Assembly: GCF_963853765.1 (NCBI RefSeq)
Contig: NC_088857.1
Span: 11,532,001 to 11,596,000, forward strand
From: Magallana gigas
Taxonomy: Eukaryota
Length of the DNA: 64,000 bases
Direction of reading: 5' to 3'
Position numbers and translations under genes: made by a program. Of the stretch, positions 7,313 to 28,750 are shown piece after piece. The stretch's first letter is position 1. Each line of letters starts with the position of its first letter. The notes below the pieces were generated by a model that was not told the origin of the DNA, made no database searches, and saw only the letters and a program-made list of their open reading frames with translations.

Positions 7313-10300
7313 TCAGAAACTCCATTCCTCTGTCACATTCATCTGCTCCATCGAGTTTATCACAGAATCTACTGCTTTATCTACAAAAGATGGCAGAATA
7401 CAGTGAATTATTACAGGAATTTTAGAGCTTTCTTTTCACTTTTTAAATTTCATTCACTGAAATGTGAACAAACTGTAAAGGTAAATACAAGTATATGATG
7501 CATACCACGGATGACAAGGGTATCTCAACTGTTTACAGTACATGTACTTTTAAACTAATGATAGAGTTATCCTATTTTATTGAAGTCAGAAATGGTAAAA
7601 TACATGTATTCGGTCAATACAAAACCCTTAACTTTTATCGTACTAACCATAAGAAACATGGCCAAAGAAGCCAACATACCATAAAATACATTGGCTAGAT
7701 TAGCCAGGTTTATTGGAATCAATGTAAGAGAAATTATGACACCCCTCTTCTTACTGTACTTACAGTCAGAAACATTGGCAAGGTTAGCCAGGTTTATTGG
7801 AATCGATGTAAGAGAAATTATGATGCCCTCTCTTCTTACTGTACTTACCGTCAGAAACATTGGATAGGTTAGCCAGGTTTATTGGAATCAATGTAAGAGA
7901 AATTATGATGCCCTCTCATCTTACTGCACCTACCATAAGAAACATTGGCTAGGATAGCCAGGTTTATTGGAATCAATGTAAGAGAAATTATGATGCCCTC
8001 TCGTCTTACTGTACTTACCGTCAGAAACATTGGCTAGGTTAGCCAGGTTTATTGGAATCGATGTAAGAGAAATTATGATACCCTCTCGTCTTACTGTACT
8101 TACCGTCAGAGACATTGGATAGGTTAGCCAGGTTTATTGGAATCAATGTAAGAGAAATTATGATGCCCTCTCATCTTACTGCACCTACCATCAGAAACAT
8201 TGGCTAGGTAAGCCAGGTTTATTGGAATCAATGTAAGAGAAATTATGATGCCCTCTCGTCTTACTGTACTTACCGTCAGAAACATTGGCTAGGTTAGCCA
8301 GGTTTATTGGAATCAATGTAAGAGAAATTATGATACCCTCTTGTCTTACTGTACTTACCGTCAGAAACATTGGCTAGGTTAGCCAGGTTTATTGGCGTCA
8401 GTGGCTGTAGGAGATTTGGCAGTGCCTCTGAGGACCTCTTCTTCAGGTGTTTAAACATTGGGTCTGATAACAAGCCCTCCGCTGATGGTCTGAAGAAAAT
8501 TTAGATATACTAATGAAAATGTACAAAGTAAATTTTTGTAGCTGCCCCTCTTGATGGAAGTTTTTGTGAACAAGACCCCAATTAGACATTTTGTATATCA
8601 GTATGATGGTTATTTATAAAACTCAGTTATAAATGAAAACAGTTCATAAGTTACTGATAGAAAGATCTTGTGTGTGTGTGTGTTGACTCCTCCAAAATTT
8701 CAAGAATAGAAGACACCGTAATGAATATTCAAACACATTAACCATACAAATAAATCAAAACCATGGAGAACTCAAATGTTGTACGTGTATCTGAATTAAA
8801 TTTTAATCTTACACAGTAACATGGCCTACATTTACCATGAAATAGCACACATCAGGTAGATTTCCTGATTCATACCTGCACTTTGGATTCTTCTCTAAAC
8901 ACCTGTCAATCAAGCTATGGAAATGGGAGGAGAATTTACGAGCCTTTGCTAAGGCAACAATATCAATTCCGCCATTCTCCAGCTCCGCATTGTGTTGAGC
9001 TGTAAATGTAAAAAGCAAGACAAGGAATAATTTAACAGCCACTCCCAACTTTAGAATCAATAAAGGCGGCACTAATTGATACATGTATCTATTCAATAAA
9101 GTACTACCGGTAGTAACAAAATTATTTCATCAAAGGCCAGTGTGAATTTCTATTGAGTAAGTAAAAATAGCTCACTGCACTATTTAATTACAATATTTCC
9201 TTTTTTTCGTGGAAAAATGGGGAAAATATGTAGCAATTTTAATTTTTGTGATTTTATGAGTTTCTTATAGAAAATACATGTAATACACAATATAATTTCT
9301 GAATATTCAGTATTTTGCGATTTGAAAGAGATCGCAAATGAAGCAAAAATTAGATCATTGCGAAAATTACTGGATATACAGTGTTATGTGTGAAGCCTTA
9401 GACTTGATGGAGGCCATGATTTTAATGACATACCATGCTCCTCTCCAGTGAGGTCTGAGATGGTTGTACAGTCCAGCAGCATTGGCTTAGTACCATTCAC
9501 TTTCTCAAGCAGCATCTATTCAAATATACAGCATATATATATATACATCCTAAATATAGTACAATTATTTTAAAGGGTGATGTATCTCAAACATGTTACA
9601 AACCTGAGTCACTGGCATGTCCTCAAACGGAGGATAGCCATTGGCCAGCTCCCAACTTGTGATTCCGAGGCTGTATATGTCTGATTTTGTGTCATATCCT
9701 GACAAATTCTAAAACAAAAATAAAATAATGTTAAAAACAGAATAATGTAGTTTTGTGTCATATCCTGACAAATTCTAAAACAAAAAAAGAGTAATACATG
9801 TATTAAAAACAGTTAAATAAATTAATGTTGTTTTGTATCACATCCAGACAAACTCTAAAACAAAAATAGAATAATATTATAAAAAAGTCAATAAATGTAG
9901 TTTTTGTGCATTAATAGAATAAATGTACTGCATACTGTTTTGAGGATTCATGAATTGGTCAACAGTGGCCTTACTCGTAAAATTGGTCATACTTCTCACT
10001 TTATTGAGCACATAGTGTTATACATCAACTCAATAACAAAATCCATGAAAGAAAATTACCAGTGTTCAATGAAAAATGATAAATCTACAGTACATGTATA
10101 TGAATTAATAAATTCATGGATTCTATTTAGTGTGTGTGATTGAGATGTTTTTACCTGCTCAAGGATTTCTGGACTGAGCCACTGCAAGTCGGCACTACAG
10201 GCCTCGGGGTAGTTATGAACCTGGTTCCACTTCCTGCCATGATGGAACATGTGGTAGACTTTGCGTAGGCCTGATAAACACACACTGCCATTGCCACCAA

Positions 10301-20500: not shown

Positions 20501-21510
20501 TTTTTGATGATTTTTAATAAAATTACACATTCATGTGAAAGAAATACAGTTGAAATCGTTAAAAGGGAATATATAAAAGATATCTTCATTGAACAATTAT
20601 CCCTTTTCACTCATAAAATTTCACAGGAATGAAAACAATTCTCTTACGGAGATTTATAATGGGAAATGTTTAAATCTTTTCTCCATTCGGAAGTACTCGG
20701 GATGCCTTGCGCAATTTTTTAACGTTATTATCCGGGCTTATTAATGGCTGATGCAATGCAAAATCTCCATATAGACTTACAATTTTGGGATAAGAGGGGG
20801 CGTTTCAAAACAGATAATCTGGACATTTTACATATTAGTGAATGAACGCAGTTTGAGCACAAAGGTATTTACTATTATTGAAATATCAGGCAAAAAGTGG
20901 TGGAAGCAAAAACTCAGACGGAGTATACAAAATCAAGTAAATTTAAAGGACTAAGTTAAACATGTAACGCAACAAGGAATTTATCAAACTCCAAAATCTT
21001 ATCTCTCACCTTCGAGTTTTGCTGAGAAATTTTAATTAAAATTCATCTTATTTCCATAAATTGGGTACAACACCATTATATAGCTTACTGCTAATTGGTA
21101 GCAAACCATCATCTCATTTCCATAATAAAGAAAGAAATATTCTATTCATATTAGTTTACCTTAATCTAACATTAGCGTTATTCGCGTGACAATTATTCCT
21201 GCAGATACTCTTGCATTTACACTTTATAATAAATTTGTTGATTTGAAAGTTAGGAAGTTAAAAAATATACGACAGAGGAAATTCGGTACGATGACAAATC
21301 AAAAATGCTTACATCCTCAACGGTTCCGTTCGTACGGTCTTTCCAACAGAAGTGCATCAGAGCATCGTCCGACTGGTAGACGTATACCATTCCCTTCCTC
21401 TTGTCAGGATGGACCATTTTACCCTTCATAAACATTTTACCGGCCCTGAATTCGACCAGATTTTTACTCTGGGAACGCCCGGTACTGCCAAACAATGCTC
21501 CTGAAGCCAT
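17503..21510 (-). CDS. ADRM1: Proteasomal ubiquitin receptor ADRM1/Rpn13, 10 coding exons
   Basis: Exons 21313-21510, 20308-20424, 20001-20130, 19792-19854, 19560-19647, 19091-19290, 18829-18852, 18435-18595, 17705-17807 and 17503-17594 splice in frame. Pru domain LVEFRAGKM…[28 protein letters not shown]…DLIIFPED…[11 protein letters not shown]…FFWMQEP; C-terminal [33 protein letters not shown]. Confidence 0.97.
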
Positions 21511-21609
21511 TTTTTCTTCGAAAAGTGTAGAGGCCGGTTCGATTTGCTCTTCTAAATACCGAAGAAGAGTCTTCCGCTTTAAGAAAACGTGTTCGTTTTA
21601 TCTAAAACT

Positions 21610-21617
21610 ACTTCCGG
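21610..21617 (+). promoter_or_regulatory. ETS-type motif (ACTTCCGG) in the transposon left end, between the ADRM1 and Myb start codons
   Basis: Exact ACTTCCGG. A mirror copy (CCGGAAGT, 26854-26861) lies upstream of the transposase ATG. Function is inferred only. Confidence 0.4.
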
Positions 21618-21667
21618 TAGATCTTCTGCCTCTTCCATCCCGCGAGCAGAAGAGACTGGAAAACAAT

Positions 21668-23792
21668 ATGGCGGATGATGGCGGGTAAGTAAAATTATGA
21701 AAAGATTTTCAAAAATGTTTATTATTAGTAGTAGTTAATCGGATAAAATTATCAACAATATGTATAAAATATGCATTAGTAATGTCAAAAAGATAATTAA
21801 CAGATTAATAAAGTATTTTAAGGTAGCAGTTAACCAGTTAACGTGGTTTATAAAAAGGGTTTCAAGTTTTGGCATGAGTGGAAAGTACAGCGAATGCGTG
21901 TATCGTTTAAATTATTGCTATGTTAATGCATTTGATTTAATGATTTTATTTTTTATAGATTCACGAATGTCAACGTTACTTTGGGGAACGGAAAACTTGT
22001 ATCTGTCCAAGTATCGCCAGAGTTGTTTGGGCACTTTACCTCATCAGGTTTTTATTCTTTAGCATACAATTAACGTGAACACATTTTTAAACATTACACA
22101 TGCATGTTTATTATAATACCTTATACCTATAATACTTGTATCTACAGGCACGTAGCATCGTTTTTGAAAGTGGGGGGGGGGGCAGACTCATCCAAAAAAT
22201 CATGACAAGCAAAAAAAAAAAAAAGAAAAAAAAAGGGAATTTTTTAAGTTTCCCAAAATCTTCAAATTCCTAATCCGGGGGGGGGGGGGGGGGGGGGGGA
22301 GGGGCTGGTGTAGTATAGCCTATAACTTCAATTTCACTTCTTATTTCCTTATTTTCAATTTTATTTTTTACATACTCCCAAAAAAGTGTGGGGGGGGGGC
22401 CAAAAATTGTTCCTGCGAGAAAAAGTGGGGGGGGGGGGGGCCAGGCCCCCCCTGATGCTACGCGCCTGATCTATTATAGATGTAATGTTAAGAAACAATT
22501 CTTACAATTAGAACTAATTCTACAAATTAAATAATAATTTAATATTTATTTTTTTATTAAGTTAATTTGTATTCATTTGTTATATAGAATATATATTTTT
22601 ATAACAGATCCTGATTTAAAACAGTTGGCTAAACAACTCATCATACAAGCAGCTATGGAGAAAGATAGTGAAGCAGAATGTGAAGAATTGCCAGGTATTT
22701 TTTCAGACATTATTTCTCCTTAAGTTTATAAAAAGGCATACTATCCTAAAGTCTGTCTCAAGATATTTTTGCCACACATTTTCTAAAATTATTCTATATC
22801 AAAATTCTTAAATTTTAATTTTATTTAATATTTTATTTATAAATACCTTTGGATTCAAATGATGTTCATTCAATAGCATGAAAAATCCAAAGATTTTCCC
22901 TTTAAATGCCCCCTCTACCTTGTCAGATTTCAATACACAGCTACATGTACAAATTAAAGGTCTACAGGGATTTTGAATTGCAAAAGAGATAAAAATACCC
23001 TGATCGTATATCATTGAAAAATTGTGCAAGGTAGTCCGAGTTAAACTTCCAAATGGAGAAAAGGTGTCAACATTTCCCATTATAAATCTCTGTAACAAAT
23101 CTGTTTTCAGTTTTTTAACTGATTTTTCTCTTGTCATTTTTGTAGACATTCCAACTGTTCCACAGACCCCAGAGAATTCACCGAAGCCTACACCATCAGG
23201 CATTTTTACATATGAACAAACTATCTTTTTAATTTCTGCCTACAAGGAGAGAAAAGAAAAGTTCTTATCACCCACTCACAAGAAAAAAGCACTGTGGCTA
23301 GAAATCACAGAAGAGTTAAACAAATGTTTTAAAACTGAGTTCACTGTGGCCCAAGTTGAAGGCAGATGGAAAACACAACTTAGTGCGTACAAGAGGCATC
23401 AAACCGACCAGGCTAAGTCAGGGAATGAAAGGAAAGAATTTCTGTATGAAGAGGAATTCCAGGATATCTTCAGTGATCGACATGATATAAATCCAAAGTT
23501 TGTGGTTTCATCTTTATCCTCAAGCTCAGATAGTGGAAGTTTCACTCAAGATGAGCCCTGCACAAGCTCAAGTTCTGGTGAGCCAGCAGGTATCACAGAT
23601 CCCCAGCCCAAAAAGAAAAGGAAAATTTCTTCCAGATCTAATTCTTCTCAAGTTATCCATTTTTTGGAAGATTATGTTGAAAATCAAAATAAAAAAAATG
23701 AAGAAAATATGAAAAAAATTGAGAAAATGCATGAGGAGAAAATGAAAATATTTAGTGGTTTCCTCTCAGTTTTTAAGAGTATGAAAGATTAA
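21668..23792 (+). CDS. Harbinger Myb/SANT(MADF)-like DNA-binding protein, 4 exons, 279 aa
   Basis: Exons 21668-21684, 21959-22047, 22608-22694 and 23146-23792 have phases 2/1/1 and total 840 nt; the exon 2 donor (GTTTTT) is weak. Trihelix/Myb-like segment FTYEQTIFLISAYKERKEKFLSPTHKKKALWLEITEELNKCFKTEFTVAQVEGRWKTQLSAYKR, then an S-rich linker, a PKKKRK NLS-like motif and a coiled-coil C-terminus. Confidence 0.85.
22145..22468. mobile_element. Poly-G/poly-A-rich MITE nested in intron 2 of the Harbinger Myb gene
   Basis: TIRs CAGGCACGTAGCATC / GATGCTACGCGCCTG (1 mismatch), with the direct repeat ATCTA on both sides. Confidence 0.8.
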
Positions 23793-24073
23793 AATATTCA
23801 TGTCTTCAAATCTCTGTTAAGCATTGAAATGTAGGTCTATGAATTCTGATGTAATGTTTTGATTTGTTTCTGCTTTATATGGTCTTTTTCCATCATGCTG
23901 TTTTCAAATATGGTATTTCATATTGATTTTCCAAACTTGTTGTATTTTTTAATTGATGTTTAGTTATTCACCAGTAACTGACTTTCCATTTCAAGATTTG
24001 AAAATTATCTGTAATTTATAGAACTGCTATGTTGGGTGCAACAATTTGATGTGTTTACTATTTTCTTTTACAG

Positions 24074-24759
24074 GATATGCATATTTATGCCACTTGCCTC
24101 CAGAAATAATATGCAAAATATTGACATACATTCCAATTCCAGAGTTGTACCATTCTGTATCTAAAGTTTGCAGTTCCATGAATTGTCTTTTTAAGAGTGG
24201 CCTTGTATGGAATTCAATAACTGACTTGAATTTTTTCAATGAAGGAATGAAAGATATATTCACTGTAGAATTTTTGAAACTTTTTGGAAATTGTGTTAAC
24301 CTTACCATGGATGCAACACTTCTGCAAGATTGTGATTTTTTGGGTAGTTTCAAAAATTTGAAATGTTTGGATATCAGGGGTTCCAAAAACGAAAATATTT
24401 GCAATGAAAACATTGTTAAAAATTTATCTAAGTGCAGATCTATGGAGAAACTCTTCATTAGCAGTTTGCCAAACTTGAGTGATGATGGTCTGTTGTTATT
24501 ATCTAAGGAGATGGGGGGAACACTGCAGTATTTACAAATTCGTAACTCTGCAGAGATCAGGCCAGAAACTTTTCAGGTTTTGATGAAAAATCTAAAGTGT
24601 ATTAAGGCCATCAGTGTGACTCCTTCTGGAGATTATGAAAAGTGGGCAAAAGTTCTAAATGAAAATGCTGTAAGGTGCAGTTTTGGGCATGAAATTCTTG
24701 ATTTTGTTCCAAAGCGATATCTTGTATATGACAGAATGTTTTACTCTCTGTTGCCCTAA
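24074..24759 (+). CDS. F-box plus leucine-rich-repeat (FBXL-like) exon inside the Harbinger element
   Basis: Stop-free frame 24046-24759. F-box-like LCHLPPEIICKILTYIPIPELYHSVSKVCSSMNCL, then LRR-like repeats (NLKCLDIRGS, SMEKLFISSLPNLSDDGL, TLQYLQIRNSAEI, CIKAISV). A strong acceptor TTTTCTTTTACAG ends at 24073; an in-frame ATG at 24049 is an alternative start. Confidence 0.8.
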
Positions 24760-25217
24760 ATGATTGTTAAAAATTGTCTGTGGAAGTTGAAGTGTGATTT
24801 AACATGCCCTTTAGTGGGCTTTTTCAGTCGCTGTATGTGAATATGTATGCGAGATTCAAGCGATATTCTTTATTTTTTAAATGCTAATTAAGCCAATATG
24901 TGATTTGTTTTTCCATAATATTGATCTCAGGTGGTTTTTAAAAAATATATTTATGTTTATAAGCATCAAGAAGATGATTGTTTTGAATAATACATTTATT
25001 ATATGTTTTTTATATAATAAAACAGTTTTTTACATGAATAAGATATGCATTGCTTTATTTTAAAAGAAGAATACACTTTGGTTTGTTCCATTAATTAATC
25101 CAATGTGTGAAAATGATTCAGAAAAAATTTCTAACACAACGTATACCAAATTTTCATTGCCAAACTGATTTCTTTTACATATATATGGTTAATTTTAAGT
25201 ACCGGTACATGCAGATT

Positions 25218-26814
25218 TTAGGTGATAGCCAACTGTCGTGTAAGTAATTGTCTCTTTAACTGTCCTTCTGCATCATTTTCAAACATTGGAATAATTAAAG
25301 GAACCTGCTGAGGGTCATTGTCAAAATGCTCATCAAGTTCGTCTTGGTTCAGGATACAAATGTTATGTAGGATGCAAGCTGTTATAATAGCCTTGACAAC
25401 ATAAGAAATGTCATTCATTTCAACAAATTGGAGACGCCGAAATCTGCCTTTCAATATGCCGAATGAATTTTCGATGATTACTCTGGTACTTGATAAAATC
25501 TGGTTGAACTTAATTTGATCCCTAGTAAGGTTTCCTCTATTTCTGTATGGAGTAATCAGCCACCGCTTGCACGGATATGCCCCATCACCTAACAAATGGC
25601 ACTGACCACAAAGAATTGGGCCTCTTTGCCTCAATGGAGAATTTTGAAAAACACGAGCATCATGCACTCGTCCTGGCCATCCACAGAAAATGTCTGTAAA
25701 TCTTTTATCTCCTCTGCACACTGCTTGAAGAATGACAGAGTGAAATTTTTTCCTATTAAAATAATCATTTGAATGTCCACTAGGGGGTTTAATGCGTATA
25801 TGTGTAGAGTCGATTGCTCCAATCACACCAGGGAAGTTCTTTTTTATCTCAAATTCATTGTTTACAGTCTGCAAATCATTTGGCCAAATCACAAATTTTT
25901 GAAGAAAGTATTTTTGGAAACATCTAACAACCTTCTGTTGTGGGAATGGAATGTCGATTCAGATACATTAAATCGATCTGCAATTGACCGAATTGTTTCT
26001 TGTGATCCTATGTACCACAGCATCATCAGTAAATCTTTTTCATGTGAAATTTGAGGTCGTCCAGCAGCTGGTTCTCTTAGTAGTAGTTCTGGAATATGCT
26101 GAATATTTTCCAATATAGCTTCGAATGTAGTTTTTGAAACACGAAAGAAGGTCTTGAATGTGTCTAAGGAATATCTTGAAACAACATCTTGCACAAAGCG
26201 TTCCACTTTATATCGTTTTCTTTGCTCCTGTCTGAAAACAAAGTTATTAATTAATTAAATTTTAATAAATTCTTGCATATTGATAGATTGTTGAATATCT
26301 TCAAATAATTTTTGTAGGAATTAGCAGAAATGTAATTTAACATTAGGTGCTATGATGACAAGCCTTAATAAATTTATGACATAGAAGTACAGGCATGTAG
26401 CATCAGGGGAAATCAGTGAAATTTAAGTTATAGGTAAACTTGCCCCCCCCCCCCCCCCCCGGATTATTATTTTAAGATTTTTGGATGACGATGCCCCCCC
26501 CCCCCCCCCCCCCCCGACTTTCAAAAACGATGTACGTGCCTGAATTATTTATAATTCAAATCAGATAAAGATAAGGTGATTCATAATATTGTGTATGTTA
26601 TTCCTTGTATTTTTTAAATGTAGACTACACATGAAAGCATTAACAATCGCTATGATGTGTGAATAAAAAGCATATAAAATTACTAAGTCCCTTACATATC
26701 ACTGCAAGCTGCAAATAGTGTAACAAATGAAAATTCTTCATCTGGCAAGTCAAAGTCTTCATCCTCAGTCATTATAATTATTGCAGCGCTAACTAAACAT
26801 CGTTTCGACGCCAT
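25218..26814 (-). pseudogene. HARBI1-like DDE transposase (DDE_Tnp_4), 2 exons, one 1-bp frameshift in this sequence
   Basis: Exon 1 is 26696-26814 (MASKRCLV…, GTAAG donor) and exon 2 is 25218-26231. HTH region (LWYIGSQETIRSIADRFNVSEST) and catalytic motifs GAIDSTHI, LLGDGAYP, RVIIENSFGILKGRFRRL and LHNICI are present. The spliced length is 1133 nt; adding one T to the run at 25918-25920 gives a 377-aa ORF (LLDVFQKYFLQKFVIWPND). Confidence 0.88.
26390..26542. mobile_element. Short MITE of the same family as 22145-22468, opposite orientation, in the transposase intron
   Basis: TIRs CAGGCATGTAGCATC / GATGTACGTGCCTG. The reverse complement begins CAGGCACGTACATCGTTTTTGAAAGT, matching the 22145 copy. 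Flanks AAGTA / AATTA. Confidence 0.75.
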
Positions 26815-28750
26815 ATTGAATCAGAAGATCACTGTTCGATTTAGCAAGAGAAACCGGAAGTTGAAAGATGACATTTTCCTCTTCTAGGAGGTGCAAATCG
26901 AACCGGCCTTAGAAGGGTAAAGTTAGAGAGTTTCCGATCTTTATATATTTTTTTTGTTAACTTGTACCAATAACGATTCGCGGCGCTGAGTAGTTACGAT
27001 TGTTTATGAGTCAAGTTTGGATGACTTCATCGAAGCTGTGTGTTCTCTCCTTGTCACATGCTAAATTCAGCATCCAAATTCCTCACAGTTGTTTAGAGCA
27101 ATTAAGAGTTCCCAGCAATTAAGAGTCCGAATGAAGTTCTAATATTAGAAGATTTTCTATGGTGTCATACTTTTTTTCATGTATTTAATGTCCGTGTGGG
27201 CGTTCCCTTAGTCAACTAGCTCTTAATCACATTATTTTATACTTTCTTTAAGCCCAACTTTATTGGAATTGAGACAGAAATCTTGAACGGTGGTTAACCC
27301 AGTCACAAACAGTTCAATTACGCAACGATTCTGCTTAGTTAAGCAGTTAACTTTTTGCATAACTGACCTTTTTATGAAGAACTGTAAAAACATATCTACC
27401 TGTACAATAAGATACAAGACATTGCATACTCATTAACTATATAAAATCTTGATTTTTCAACGTGCATGCAGCTAGCCTCAGCGATGCGAAAACGTGCAAC
27501 CTGTTAACATATTAAAATTAAAACTCAGCTTCTTTTTTACACATTCAATTTTTCTCTCTGAATATACCAATTTAAGGACTAGGGAATCATTCTTTGACTT
27601 TTATGAGGTAATCATTACAGTCGGGACCTTGATCAAATAAAAAAAAAAGCCAAAGAAAACGTATTTGAAATATTTTAAAGTTCCAAATGTTGAACAGATT
27701 GTAAGAGCAGTACGAATAGATAATGTCCCCCGAGAAGAGTTTGAGTGTTTGAAACAATTTTTGACCATATAAACGAATACATTAAAAGTTTTTCTTTATG
27801 AGACCTCATTTCACGAAGAGGACTCTTAACCCTCCCCCAAAAAGTACTTATGATCTTTTCAACAGTAAATGTTGATCACGATCACATGTGTCGGTCAATT
27901 ATCAGCTTATATTTGTTTTGTTAAAAAAAATCTTGAATCGCATCTGTCCTCCTATTTAGAGTTTTTAAAAAGAGACCCGCTCTTTCCATATTTTAAGCAT
28001 TCGCATGTTACAAAAGTATAATAAAAATAACCAATATCATTTATTCACATTTATTCGAATATCACGAAAAGTAAGTTGATGTTGACACCCATTAAGACAA
28101 CAAAATACAATATACATCCAAAATGTTACTGTTTGCAGTCTATATAGGCCATGTTTACACCAATCACATAGACATATTTGAAAGTTATGTAAATGGGGGT
28201 GGGGGCTACTTAAAGCCATTTGCCATGCAAAAAATTAAAATGAATAAACAAACAAACTACATGTACTTCACCTAGCCTCAAATAATTTTAATCCGTCGTT
28301 GTGGTGGGGGGCTCCCAAGACGCCCCCCCCTTTTGTCACGTTTCTAAAAAAATAAAGTGCTGTCATTTCAATTCATTCTAAAATTTTAATCAGTCCTCGA
28401 TTGTTTTGTTCAGGTATTGCCGCTAGCTGCTGCAGGTTACTGAGTGTGTGGCCACTGGGTGGTGAGATGTCAGGACAGCTCTCAATGTGTTCTTGAGACA
28501 ATAATCAATGGTAGAAAGACACACCCTATTTGGCAGAAATGTCGAAAAGAATAAACATGCCATCATAACACGATCCCGAACCATTAAAGACGTTGGTGAT
28601 TTTATTTTTCTTTGTGTCTTTTTATTTATTTATTTATTTATTTATTTGTTTGTTTTTTAATTGCTTCTTCAGCTTGATAAGTACATGTGCATACATTACA
28701 AGACTATATAATGTCTTAAATTTAATCGGTATGGTTGTATGTATTTTTAA

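Follow-up and report, generated by a model that had tools for sequence, protein, structure and literature searches.

An oyster Harbinger transposon whose Myb-like helper gene is alternatively spliced to an exon predicted to encode an F-box/LRR module

The transposon and its genes

The window, i.e. the whole 64-kb stretch of oyster DNA analysed here, contains a PIF/Harbinger DNA transposon of 5,379 bp at positions 21531-26909, which is young and insertion-polymorphic. It is bounded by a perfect 17-nt terminal inverted repeat (TIR; left end AGGCCGGTTCGATTTGC, 21531-21547, plus strand; right end 26893-26909, minus strand) and by the 3-bp target site duplication (TSD) TAG at 21528-21530 and 26910-26912. 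The homology with the second genomic copy (G000:C10), which is 98% identical to the window copy, begins exactly at 21531. Further signs of mobility come from RNA data, which add two insertion sites and an empty allele of the window site: RNA contigs of the data sets X1 and X3 continue precisely from the element boundaries 21531 and 26909 into different flanking sequences, with the TSDs ATT and CGA, and in X4 a transcript of the neighbouring gene ADRM1 passes from 21531 directly to the sequence past 26909. The TSDs at the four insertion sites (TAG in the window, GAT in the C10 copy, ATT and CGA) deviate from TWA, the classical consensus of PIF/Harbinger elements.

The first coding exon of ADRM1/Rpn13 (21313-21510, minus strand; Pfam Rpn13_ADRM1_Pru, E 2.7e-15) lies in the host flank outside the element, and its ATG sits 20 nt from the transposon end. 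Within the element, the subterminal motif ACTTCCGGT was detected at 21610-21618 on the plus strand with a partner at 26853-26861 on the minus strand. These are its only two occurrences in the 64-kb window, one by each element end and in inverted orientation, whereas 0.19 would be expected by chance. Motifs of the CCGGAAG type were also detected close to the end of the element of Pecten. ACTTCCGGT is therefore regarded as a candidate binding site of the Myb domain described below.

The transposase is encoded on the minus strand by two exons, the first of which (coding part 26696-26814, ATG at 26814-26812) is separated by an intron (26232-26695, GT..AG on the minus strand) from the second (25218-26231), which encodes the HTH and DDE_Tnp_4 domains (PF13359, E 3.2e-35). 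The joint 26231/26696 (CT..AC) is present in RNA contigs of X1 and X3. The transposase frame, with a dN/dS of 0.09, is intact in the C10 copy (377 aa), whereas the window copy carries a frameshift due to a 1-nt length difference at 25917 and reaches a stop after about 153 aa; an additional A follows this position in the C10 copy and in all RNA contigs. The intron also holds the second copy of a nested short repeat with poly-G runs. The first copy (22140-22475, no strand assigned), located in intron 2 of the helper gene, has more than 40 genomic matches of 84-88% identity, is spliced out in all RNA contigs and adds no coding capacity.

The second gene of the element, on the plus strand, begins with three short exons comprising 193 nt in total, with GT donors, AG acceptors and a final phase of 1: exon 1 (21668-21684) provides the ATG and 17 coding nt (donor CGG/gtaagt, phase 2), exon 2 (21959-22047) 89 nt (donor CAG/gttttt, phase 1) and exon 3 (22608-22694) 87 nt (donor CAG/gtattt, phase 1). 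They are followed by the Myb exon, which starts at a phase-1 acceptor (tttttgtag/AC, 23146) and whose part common to both transcript forms described below (23146-23589) encodes a predicted Myb/SANT-trihelix domain and a disordered linker. The junctions 22047/22608 and 22694/23146, the latter already drawn in the first-pass annotation of this locus, were found in RNA contigs of three studies (X1, X3, X4) and in the Logan RNA contigs L054 and L055. The splice 21684/21959 was likewise detected in L054 and L055, which derive from a roughly 95% identical copy (protein P0045, MAEDGGFTNVNV...), and was not seen in the RNA contigs of X1 and X3, which retain intron 1.

In the Pfam search the window's own frame (23148-23789) gave a weak Myb/SANT match below the cut-off (E 0.006), and five of the eight aligned homologues matched Myb_DNA-bind_4 with a best E of 4e-16. 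The AlphaFold model of the Myb exon has three helices at exon residues 22-90, for which Foldseek returned the GT-1 trihelix, Sap1 and Zeste with probabilities of 0.95-0.98. Based on this sequence and model evidence the gene is assigned to the Myb/SANT-trihelix class; the Myb region has a dN/dS of 0.06.

Retention and removal of an intron in the Myb exon

The Myb exon contains an internal phase-1 donor (23589/23590, CAG/GTATCA), which is joined to a phase-1 acceptor at 24074 (ttttcttttacag/GA), thereby removing an alternative intron at 23590-24073 on the plus strand. The joint 23589/24074 has GT..AG ends, is in frame and was found in RNA contigs of two studies, with a mean contig depth of 27.5 in X4 and 11.8 in X1; a single X4 contig contains it together with the exon 2/3 and exon 3/Myb junctions. 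The unspliced path was detected in all three studies, with a depth of 9.7 in X1 and 11.6 in X4 (23561-24100) and as a continuous contig with a depth of 29.4 in X3, where it is the only form. As assembled contigs, these data establish the presence of both forms and not their proportions. Since the depth of intron 3 is zero in X1, the material of this study represents RNA and not DNA.

Both the retained and the spliced form have an open reading frame. In the retained form, 23590-23792 encodes the tail of a 279-aa Myb-like helper, consisting of the nuclear localisation signal (NLS) PKKKRK, a long C-terminal helix and the stop at 23790-23792, and the remainder of the intron is the spacer up to the acceptor. 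The spliced form encodes 440 aa, the first 212 of which are common with the helper and include the predicted Myb/trihelix domain; the NLS and the conserved C-terminal helix are replaced by an F-box/LRR (FBXL-like) module. The 440-aa isoform is thus without the sole obvious NLS. According to the AlphaFold model the donor falls in a disordered stretch (112-164) between the trihelix domain and the C-terminal helix, the latter being modelled with a pLDDT of about 90. The tail has a dN/dS of 0.23, is conserved throughout the Harbinger helpers of this genome and keeps its motif even in Harbinger families that are devoid of the F-box.

The event is best described as intron retention or the use of an alternative 5' splice site in a coding exon and not as a choice between alternative last exons, since contigs read on past the Myb stop into the F-box exon without a splice and the one ATTAAA behind this stop, which overlaps it at 23788, is not conserved in the related element L044. 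Contigs cannot show RNA ends; the two forms probably share their 3' end, and the 3' UTR of the F-box exon probably extends to about 25040 (AATAAA at 25016).

The first-pass annotation had proposed exactly such alternative last exons, with the exon 3 donor (22694) spliced to one of two acceptors, that of the Myb exon or that of the F-box exon, the latter giving an F-box protein of 292 aa which would share 64 residues with the helper and lack a DNA-binding domain. Its sequence observations are confirmed: the donor 22694 and the acceptors 23146 and 24074 are all phase 1, a joint of 22694 with 24074 leaves the frame open over 879 nt and 292 aa (...AECEELP-G-YAYLCHLPPE...), and the distance between the Myb stop and the F-box exon, given there as about 280 bp, measures 281 nt. 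Skipping of the Myb exon would indeed preserve the frame, given that phase 1 is common to every intron behind exon 2 in the copies from oyster, L044 and Pecten, and rare isoforms can drop out of contigs. Moreover, in a distant element of the same genome (G000:C9) the F-box acceptor is phase 2 and fits the exon-1 donor alone, which would give a stand-alone F-box protein. However, the agreement in phase is weak evidence because it is expected in one of three cases by chance and, with all introns after exon 2 in phase 1, any donor fits. Furthermore, the junction 22694/24074 is absent from X1, X3 and X4, despite a depth of 10-50 in the flanking exons, and from the raw reads of X21. In the RNA contigs donor 22694 is joined only to 23146, and the donor that leads to the F-box exon is 23589, which lies within the other supposed terminal exon; the Pecten gene model also takes the internal donor. 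Direct splicing from exon 3 to the F-box exon therefore seems unlikely.

The earlier interpretation is thus partly supported. That one gene gives rise to two proteins agrees with the occurrence of both forms in RNA; what they share is a segment of 212 residues with the Myb/trihelix domain instead of a 64-aa N-terminus. Similarly, the suggested division into one DNA-binding and one SKP1-binding protein has to be modified: as judged from the sequence of the shared segment, both proteins should bind DNA and one would additionally carry the F-box.

The F-box/LRR exon and its conservation

The F-box exon (24074-24759, plus strand) comprises 227 codons behind its phase-1 acceptor and ends with the stop at 24757-24759. 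A Pfam search with the frame 24076-24756 revealed an F-box-like domain above the cut-off (E 4.8e-7; PF12937, 29.9 bits with a cut-off of 24.3; PF00646, 27.0 bits with a cut-off of 20.5) and weak matches only for LRR. In the AlphaFold model (pLDDT 78.8) the exon forms alternating strand-helix repeats, and the top Foldseek matches were SKP2, FBXL2, FBXL3 and FBXL17 with a probability of 1.00 and a TM score of about 0.5. The exon should thus encode an F-box/LRR module of the FBXL class for which docking to SKP1 is predicted. Since both genomic copies and all relatives have it, the F-box exon belongs to the transposon.

Both splice sites, with their phase of 1, are conserved in L044 (73% identity), in Saccostrea cucullata (L053, 82%) and in Pecten maximus (L046, F-box 35% aa identity), and the annotated Pecten gene model P0029 joins Myb_DNA-bind_4 to an F-box-like domain at the homologous Gly codon. 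By sequence comparison the splice pair is therefore conserved as far as scallop. The expectation that acceptor and phase would be kept in other copies holds for these three relatives and not for the C9 element, which has the same order of Myb, F-box and transposase on the opposite strand. Its F-box acceptor is phase 2 and its internal Myb donors are phase 1, so that a Myb-F-box fusion is out of frame in this copy as it stands. In L048 a helper-like tail exon, the F-box and the transposase follow each other on the same strand. An F-box is missing from the most closely related other Harbinger family of this genome (transposase 49% identical), and no Myb or transposase was detectable by tblastn and a purpose-built Myb HMM near the distant F-box relatives P0008, P0011, P0012 and P0017. 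The F-box family has a C-terminal motif (W-A-x-I/L-N...FGH-x-I/L-D-x-VP) which is common to distant relatives.

It could be argued that the transposon has a separate third gene, formed by the F-box/LRR frame and driven by a promoter within the 281-nt spacer, with a start at 24049, where an in-frame ATG is located that is retained in Saccostrea. Stranded poly(A) reads of X21 map in sense orientation to 24205-24952, and the few raw reads lie on the F-box exon, with none on a junction and none on the Myb exon; in X1 the depth of the F-box exon exceeds that of the Myb exon, although the contig also contains transposase transcripts. However, the X21 pattern is equally expected from a 3' bias on a long shared transcript, the ATG is situated within the polypyrimidine tract belonging to an acceptor whose use is evident from the RNA contigs, and it is missing from L044, L045, Pecten and the C9 element; in the last of these the spacer between Myb and F-box is down to about 70 nt. 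An independent start at 24049 was consequently rejected as not conserved in relatives, and in L044, L045 and Pecten the F-box exon depends on splicing because this ATG is missing there. A scan for bacterial promoters and terminators was set aside as irrelevant to an animal genome. A separate third gene thus appears improbable, and the earlier view that the F-box exon needs no promoter or start of its own holds, as the exon is spliced to the transcript of the Myb gene by the joint 23589/24074 in the RNA contigs.

Alternatively, the F-box exon might be a captured fragment of a host gene and the fusion transcript functionless splicing noise. Harbinger elements can capture host sequence, the donor CAG/GTATCA is weak, and all four differences in the F-box between the window copy and the other copies change amino acids. 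On the other hand, the frame is open in both genomic copies, L044 and Saccostrea, and with a dN/dS of 0.26 relative to L044, over about 30% protein divergence, the sequence comparison indicates that it is under purifying selection. Donor, acceptor and phase are kept in Pecten, and a protein search of the oyster's own genome revealed no host parent or paralogue of the F-box, the only matches being element copies, the C9 element and decayed fragments on C8 and C3. The surroundings of the F-box fragments on C8 and C1 were examined and provided no informative context. Taking this evidence together, mere capture and splicing noise is slightly less probable again than a third gene. That the joint 23589/24074 reflects a DNA copy with an internal deletion is very unlikely, considering its canonical GT..AG ends with a long polypyrimidine tract, its open frame, its position on one X4 contig with two other splice junctions, the presence of 23590-24073 in both genomic copies and the conservation of the site pair across genera.

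Proposed role and comparison with known systems

We consider it likely that one helper transcription unit gives rise to two proteins by means of the weak GT donor in the last Myb-coding exon, and the long form would act as a DNA-tethered substrate receptor. RNA in which 23590-24073 is kept would yield the helper with its N-terminal region, Myb/trihelix domain, linker, NLS and long C-terminal helix, and removal of this stretch would let the first 212 residues run in frame into the FBXL-type F-box and LRR. The Myb domain of the long isoform would then recognise the same sites at the transposon ends as the helper, possibly ACTTCCGGT. Through its F-box this isoform would bind SKP1-CUL1, and a substrate held by the LRR would be ubiquitylated at the transposon. 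As substrate we would favour the transposase or the transpososome, leading to turnover or self-limitation; alternatively, a host chromatin or silencing factor may be targeted as a counter-defence. Furthermore, the long isoform may compete with the helper for binding sites, since what it has lost is the very tail that every Harbinger helper of this genome has conserved.

A more general proposal, which we put forward tentatively and at somewhat less than an even chance, is that a bivalve lineage of Harbinger elements encodes a DNA-tethered SCF receptor and that regulated splicing switches between the recruitment of transposase and of a ubiquitin ligase at the transposon ends. If true, such a switch could serve to clear or restrain the transposase once transposition has taken place, or to degrade a host silencing factor located at the element. 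A conserved and expressed isoform fusing the DNA-binding domain of the helper to an F-box/LRR module would represent a third Harbinger activity and provide a testable handle on the regulation of eukaryotic transposons, the dismantling of transpososomes and the fight against host silencing. In the literature we found no paper on a Harbinger element with an F-box and nothing pertinent on a transposon-encoded F-box protein, and to our knowledge no other cut-and-paste transposon encodes a ubiquitin-ligase adaptor directed to its own DNA. Recruitment of Harbinger helpers as chromatin adaptors of the host has occurred repeatedly, as exemplified by NAIF1 and the MSANTD genes (PMC9392472). With respect to such domestication, the helper of the oyster element would already be a modular adaptor while still within a mobile element.

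Similar to SKP2, FBXL2, FBXL3 and FBXL17 of the FBXL class, which are the best structural matches over its full 227 residues, the oyster module is predicted to consist of an F-box followed by an LRR solenoid. It differs from them by its low identity of 14-16%, its shortness (about six repeats), its family-specific C-terminal motif and the lack of a host copy in the genome.

Canonical PIF/Harbinger elements such as Harbinger3_DR encode two proteins, a transposase and a Myb-like helper which has an NLS and binds the transposon ends and the transposase, according to Sinzelle et al. 2008 as summarised in PMC9392472. The oyster element resembles them in its DDE_Tnp_4 transposase, its separate helper gene of the Myb/SANT-trihelix type, its short TIRs and 3-bp TSD, and the NLS of its helper. 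It differs by an additional 3' exon of the helper gene and by an internal donor, the use of which replaces the NLS and the C-terminal helix with the predicted F-box/LRR module.

In the P element of Drosophila, retention of the third intron leads to a 66-kDa repressor instead of the 87-kDa transposase. As in the oyster element, one intron is retained or removed to give two proteins with a common DNA-binding domain and different effector parts. However, the gene concerned in the P element is that of the transposase and the retained product is a truncated repressor, whereas in the oyster it is the helper gene and the spliced product gains the predicted ubiquitin-ligase adaptor.

F-box proteins are also encoded by viruses, e.g. 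P0 of poleroviruses, Clink of nanoviruses and the ankyrin/PRANC proteins of poxviruses. Like these viruses, the oyster transposon is a selfish element that encodes its own predicted SCF substrate receptor, which would redirect host ubiquitylation. The viral proteins, however, are stand-alone F-box proteins acting against host defence or cell-cycle proteins, whereas the F-box of the oyster element is fused to the putative sequence-specific DNA-binding domain of a DNA transposon.

Splicing of the helper gene

For the helper gene, the Myb-like gene of a PIF/Harbinger element, the first-pass annotation had proposed alternative last exons, the exon 3 donor (22694) being joined either to the Myb exon (acceptor 23146) or to the F-box exon (24074-24759, plus strand). 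The underlying sequence facts were recomputed and are correct: the 5' exons 21668-21684, 21959-22047 and 22608-22694 (plus strand, GT donors, AG acceptors) have a combined length of 193 nt, which leaves phase 1; both acceptors are phase 1, and a 292-aa open frame results when 22694 is joined to 24074. The Myb stop lies 281 nt from the F-box exon. According to Pfam, 24076-24756 contains an F-box-like domain (E 4.8e-7) and 23148-23789 a weak Myb/SANT match. The first intron (21685-21958) is retained in contigs of the RNA sets X1 and X3 and spliced out in the Logan RNA contigs L054 and L055 (copy roughly 95% identical; product beginning MAEDGGFTNVNV); the proposed 5' exons are therefore real. The phase match alone has a 1 in 3 chance and does not single out a donor, since phase 1 is shared by every intron downstream of exon 2.

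The RNA comparison covered 21400-27000 and comprised contig sets from three studies (X1, X3, X4) and one raw poly(A) read run (X21). Junctions 22047/22608 and 22694/23146 were seen in all three sets, while the proposed 22694/24074 junction was found neither in their contigs nor in the X21 reads of this region. Instead, the F-box exon is joined from a donor inside the Myb exon: the GT..AG junction 23589/24074 was found in X1 at a depth of 11.8 and also in X4, where the mean depth of the contig is 27.5. A single X4 contig of 640 nt runs through exon 2, exon 3, Myb positions 23144-23586 and 30 nt at the start of the F-box exon without extra letters. This donor (CAG/GTATCA) is phase 1, so that the frame continues via a Gly codon into the F-box frame. 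The unspliced path across 23561-24100 was also detected in X1 (9.7), in X4 (11.6) and, as the sole form, in X3 (29.4); the contigs show the presence of forms, ratios and RNA ends being outside their reach. An internally deleted DNA copy is an improbable alternative source of the 23589/24074 joint. The depth of intron 3 is zero in X1, so these contigs are RNA-derived. In X21 a few sense-strand reads map to 24205-24952 and none to the Myb exon; these thin data are consistent with a 3' end past the F-box exon, with AATAAA at 25016.

The proposal thus holds in so far as there is one transcription unit with two mRNA forms, both with open frames and diverging within a predicted disordered linker. 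However, no branching at exon 3 was seen in these RNA data, and alternative last exons in the proposed sense do not describe the event. Transcripts in X1 and L054 contain flanking host sequence, hence at least some expression reads in from outside the element. Spliced helper and transposase transcripts (X1 contigs; L054:1-155) reach hundreds of bases into the host flanks of other insertion sites, which suggests read-in transcription from host promoters. Part of intron 3 (22819-23108) is another dispersed repeat; in X3 and X21 it is deeply covered and shows variant letters, and locus L036 matches it twice.

Protein products and their conservation

Retention of the intron yields the 279-aa helper, and its removal a 440-aa product in which 227 F-box/LRR residues stand in place of the 66-residue helper tail. 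Both have the first 212 residues in common, not the N-terminal 64 aa expected from the exon 3 junction. AlphaFold models the Myb exon as a three-helix domain (exon residues 22-90), a disordered segment (112-164) in which both the NLS PKKKRK and the donor (residue 147/148) lie, and a long confident C-terminal helix (166-213). The tail motif M-H-x-E-K-M...F-x-x-F-L is kept even in F-box-less Harbinger families of the same genome. The F-box exon is predicted to fold into an F-box with about six LRRs behind it (best structural matches SKP2, FBXL2, FBXL3 and FBXL17); by sequence and fold it fits an FBXL-type F-box protein, putatively binding SKP1. Compared with the second genomic copy (G000:C10) and the RNA copies, all four differences in this exon (24287, 24309, 24497, 24526) change amino acids, too few to test.

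Donor, acceptor and phase 1 are kept in three relatives: a Logan contig (L044, 73% identical; CGG/GTATCT, TTTTCTTTTACAG/GT), Saccostrea cucullata (L053, 82% identical over 23114-24777; CAG/GTATCA, TTTTTTACAG/GA) and the scallop Pecten maximus (L046; AGCTCAG/GTGAGG at 8138/8139, ttgtag/GT at 8555/8556). In Pecten the TIR of the element is similar, and an NLS-and-helix tail lies between donor and acceptor; the deposited gene model P0029 is spliced at precisely these two sites and combines Myb_DNA-bind_4 (E 1.1e-6) with a following F-box-like domain (E 1.1e-7). An ATG equivalent to that at 24049 is absent from L044, the relative L045 and Pecten. Comparison of the window copy with L044 gave dN/dS values of 0.06 (Myb part), 0.09 (transposase), 0.23 (tail) and 0.26 (F-box). 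An F-box is lacking in the nearest other Harbinger family, whose transposase is 49% identical. In a metagenome contig (L048:1076-2864) a tail exon resembling that of the helper, with NLS and helix, precedes an F-box/LRR exon with the tandem acceptor cagtgcag; a DDE_Tnp_4 frame comes next and is encoded on the same strand. The wider family therefore has no fixed arrangement of these three parts.

The conservation of acceptor phase does not extend to a much more distant, single-copy Harbinger element with six helper exons (L033:4400-7560 = G000:C9:40987400-40990560, minus strand), whose gene order, with a convergent transposase, equals that of the window element. Its F-box acceptor, about 70 nt after the Myb stop, is in phase 2; of its donors only that of exon 1 is compatible, the internal ones being phase 1, and no usable start codon exists in the F-box frame. 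Either this copy may be damaged, or an F-box protein on its own may be produced in that lineage; its only relatives are decayed ones on C3 and C2.

The element and its insertion sites

The stretch 21531-26909 is a PIF/Harbinger transposon of 5,379 bp, in which every feature tested for such elements was found. Its ends form a perfect 17-nt inverted repeat (AGGCCGGTTCGATTTGC); the C10 copy is 98% identical across 21531-26909 and shows no relation beyond, and the 3-bp TSD is TAG in the window and GAT on C10. Besides the helper gene and the F-box exon (both plus strand), the element contains a two-exon transposase gene on the minus strand (ATG 26814, intron 26695-26232, based on an RNA junction and the frame) with DDE_Tnp_4 at 25221-25892 (Pfam E 3e-35). 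A one-base length difference at 25917 relative to every other copy shifts the transposase frame in the window; in the C10 copy the transposase is intact (377 aa), but the Myb exon is interrupted by a TGA at the equivalent of 23317. Each copy is thus broken in a different gene, and neither lesion occurs in the expressed copies of the RNA data.

RNA contigs pass from the element into two more flanks (TSDs ATT and CGA), with 21531 and 26909 as the exact exit points, and X4 contains an empty site within the ADRM1 5' UTR. The family has therefore been recently mobile, and the window insertion is polymorphic. The left flank encodes the Rpn13/ADRM1 Pru domain (Pfam). The element lies upstream of the ADRM1/Rpn13 start codon, 20 nt away (21510-21531), in the 5' UTR; the ADRM1 transcript of X4, at a depth of about 130, runs across the empty site. 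The former ADRM1 promoter side (26910 onward) now faces the transposase gene in sense orientation.

Further repeats were noted within the element. Two nested copies of a very abundant poly-G short repeat (>40 genomic matches at 84-88%) lie in opposite orientation in helper intron 2 (22140-22475) and the transposase intron (26380-26545); both are common to the C10 element, the first being 127 nt shorter there. A 39-nt inverted repeat (25085-25123 / 25266-25304, 90% complementary) sits between the F-box 3' UTR and the transposase coding end, where the convergent transcripts meet. The motif ACTTCCGGT occurs inverted at 21610-21618 (plus) and 26853-26861 (minus), its only two occurrences in the 64-kb window; CCGGAAG-like motifs are also found near the Pecten element end.

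Possible role of the F-box isoform

F-box proteins bind SKP1 and serve as substrate receptors of SCF. The 440-aa isoform would retain the DNA-targeting domain, with ACTTCCGGT, once near each end, as candidate site, and would trade the helper tail for a ligase adaptor; it would thereby recruit SCF to the element or act there as a competitor of the helper. According to the account of Sinzelle et al. (2008) in PMC9392472, the trihelix domain of the Harbinger helper binds the transposon ends, and the helper binds the transposase and imports it to the nucleus. The favoured substrate would be the transposase or transpososome, implying self-limitation or disassembly; alternatively, it may be a host chromatin or silencing factor, and the data fit both equally.

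Full-text searches of the literature gave no report of a Harbinger element with an F-box. The helper switch resembles that of the P element, in which intron retention gives two proteins with a common DNA-binding domain. Likewise, the Harbinger F-box exon may be compared with viral F-box proteins, by which a selfish element supplies its own SCF receptor.
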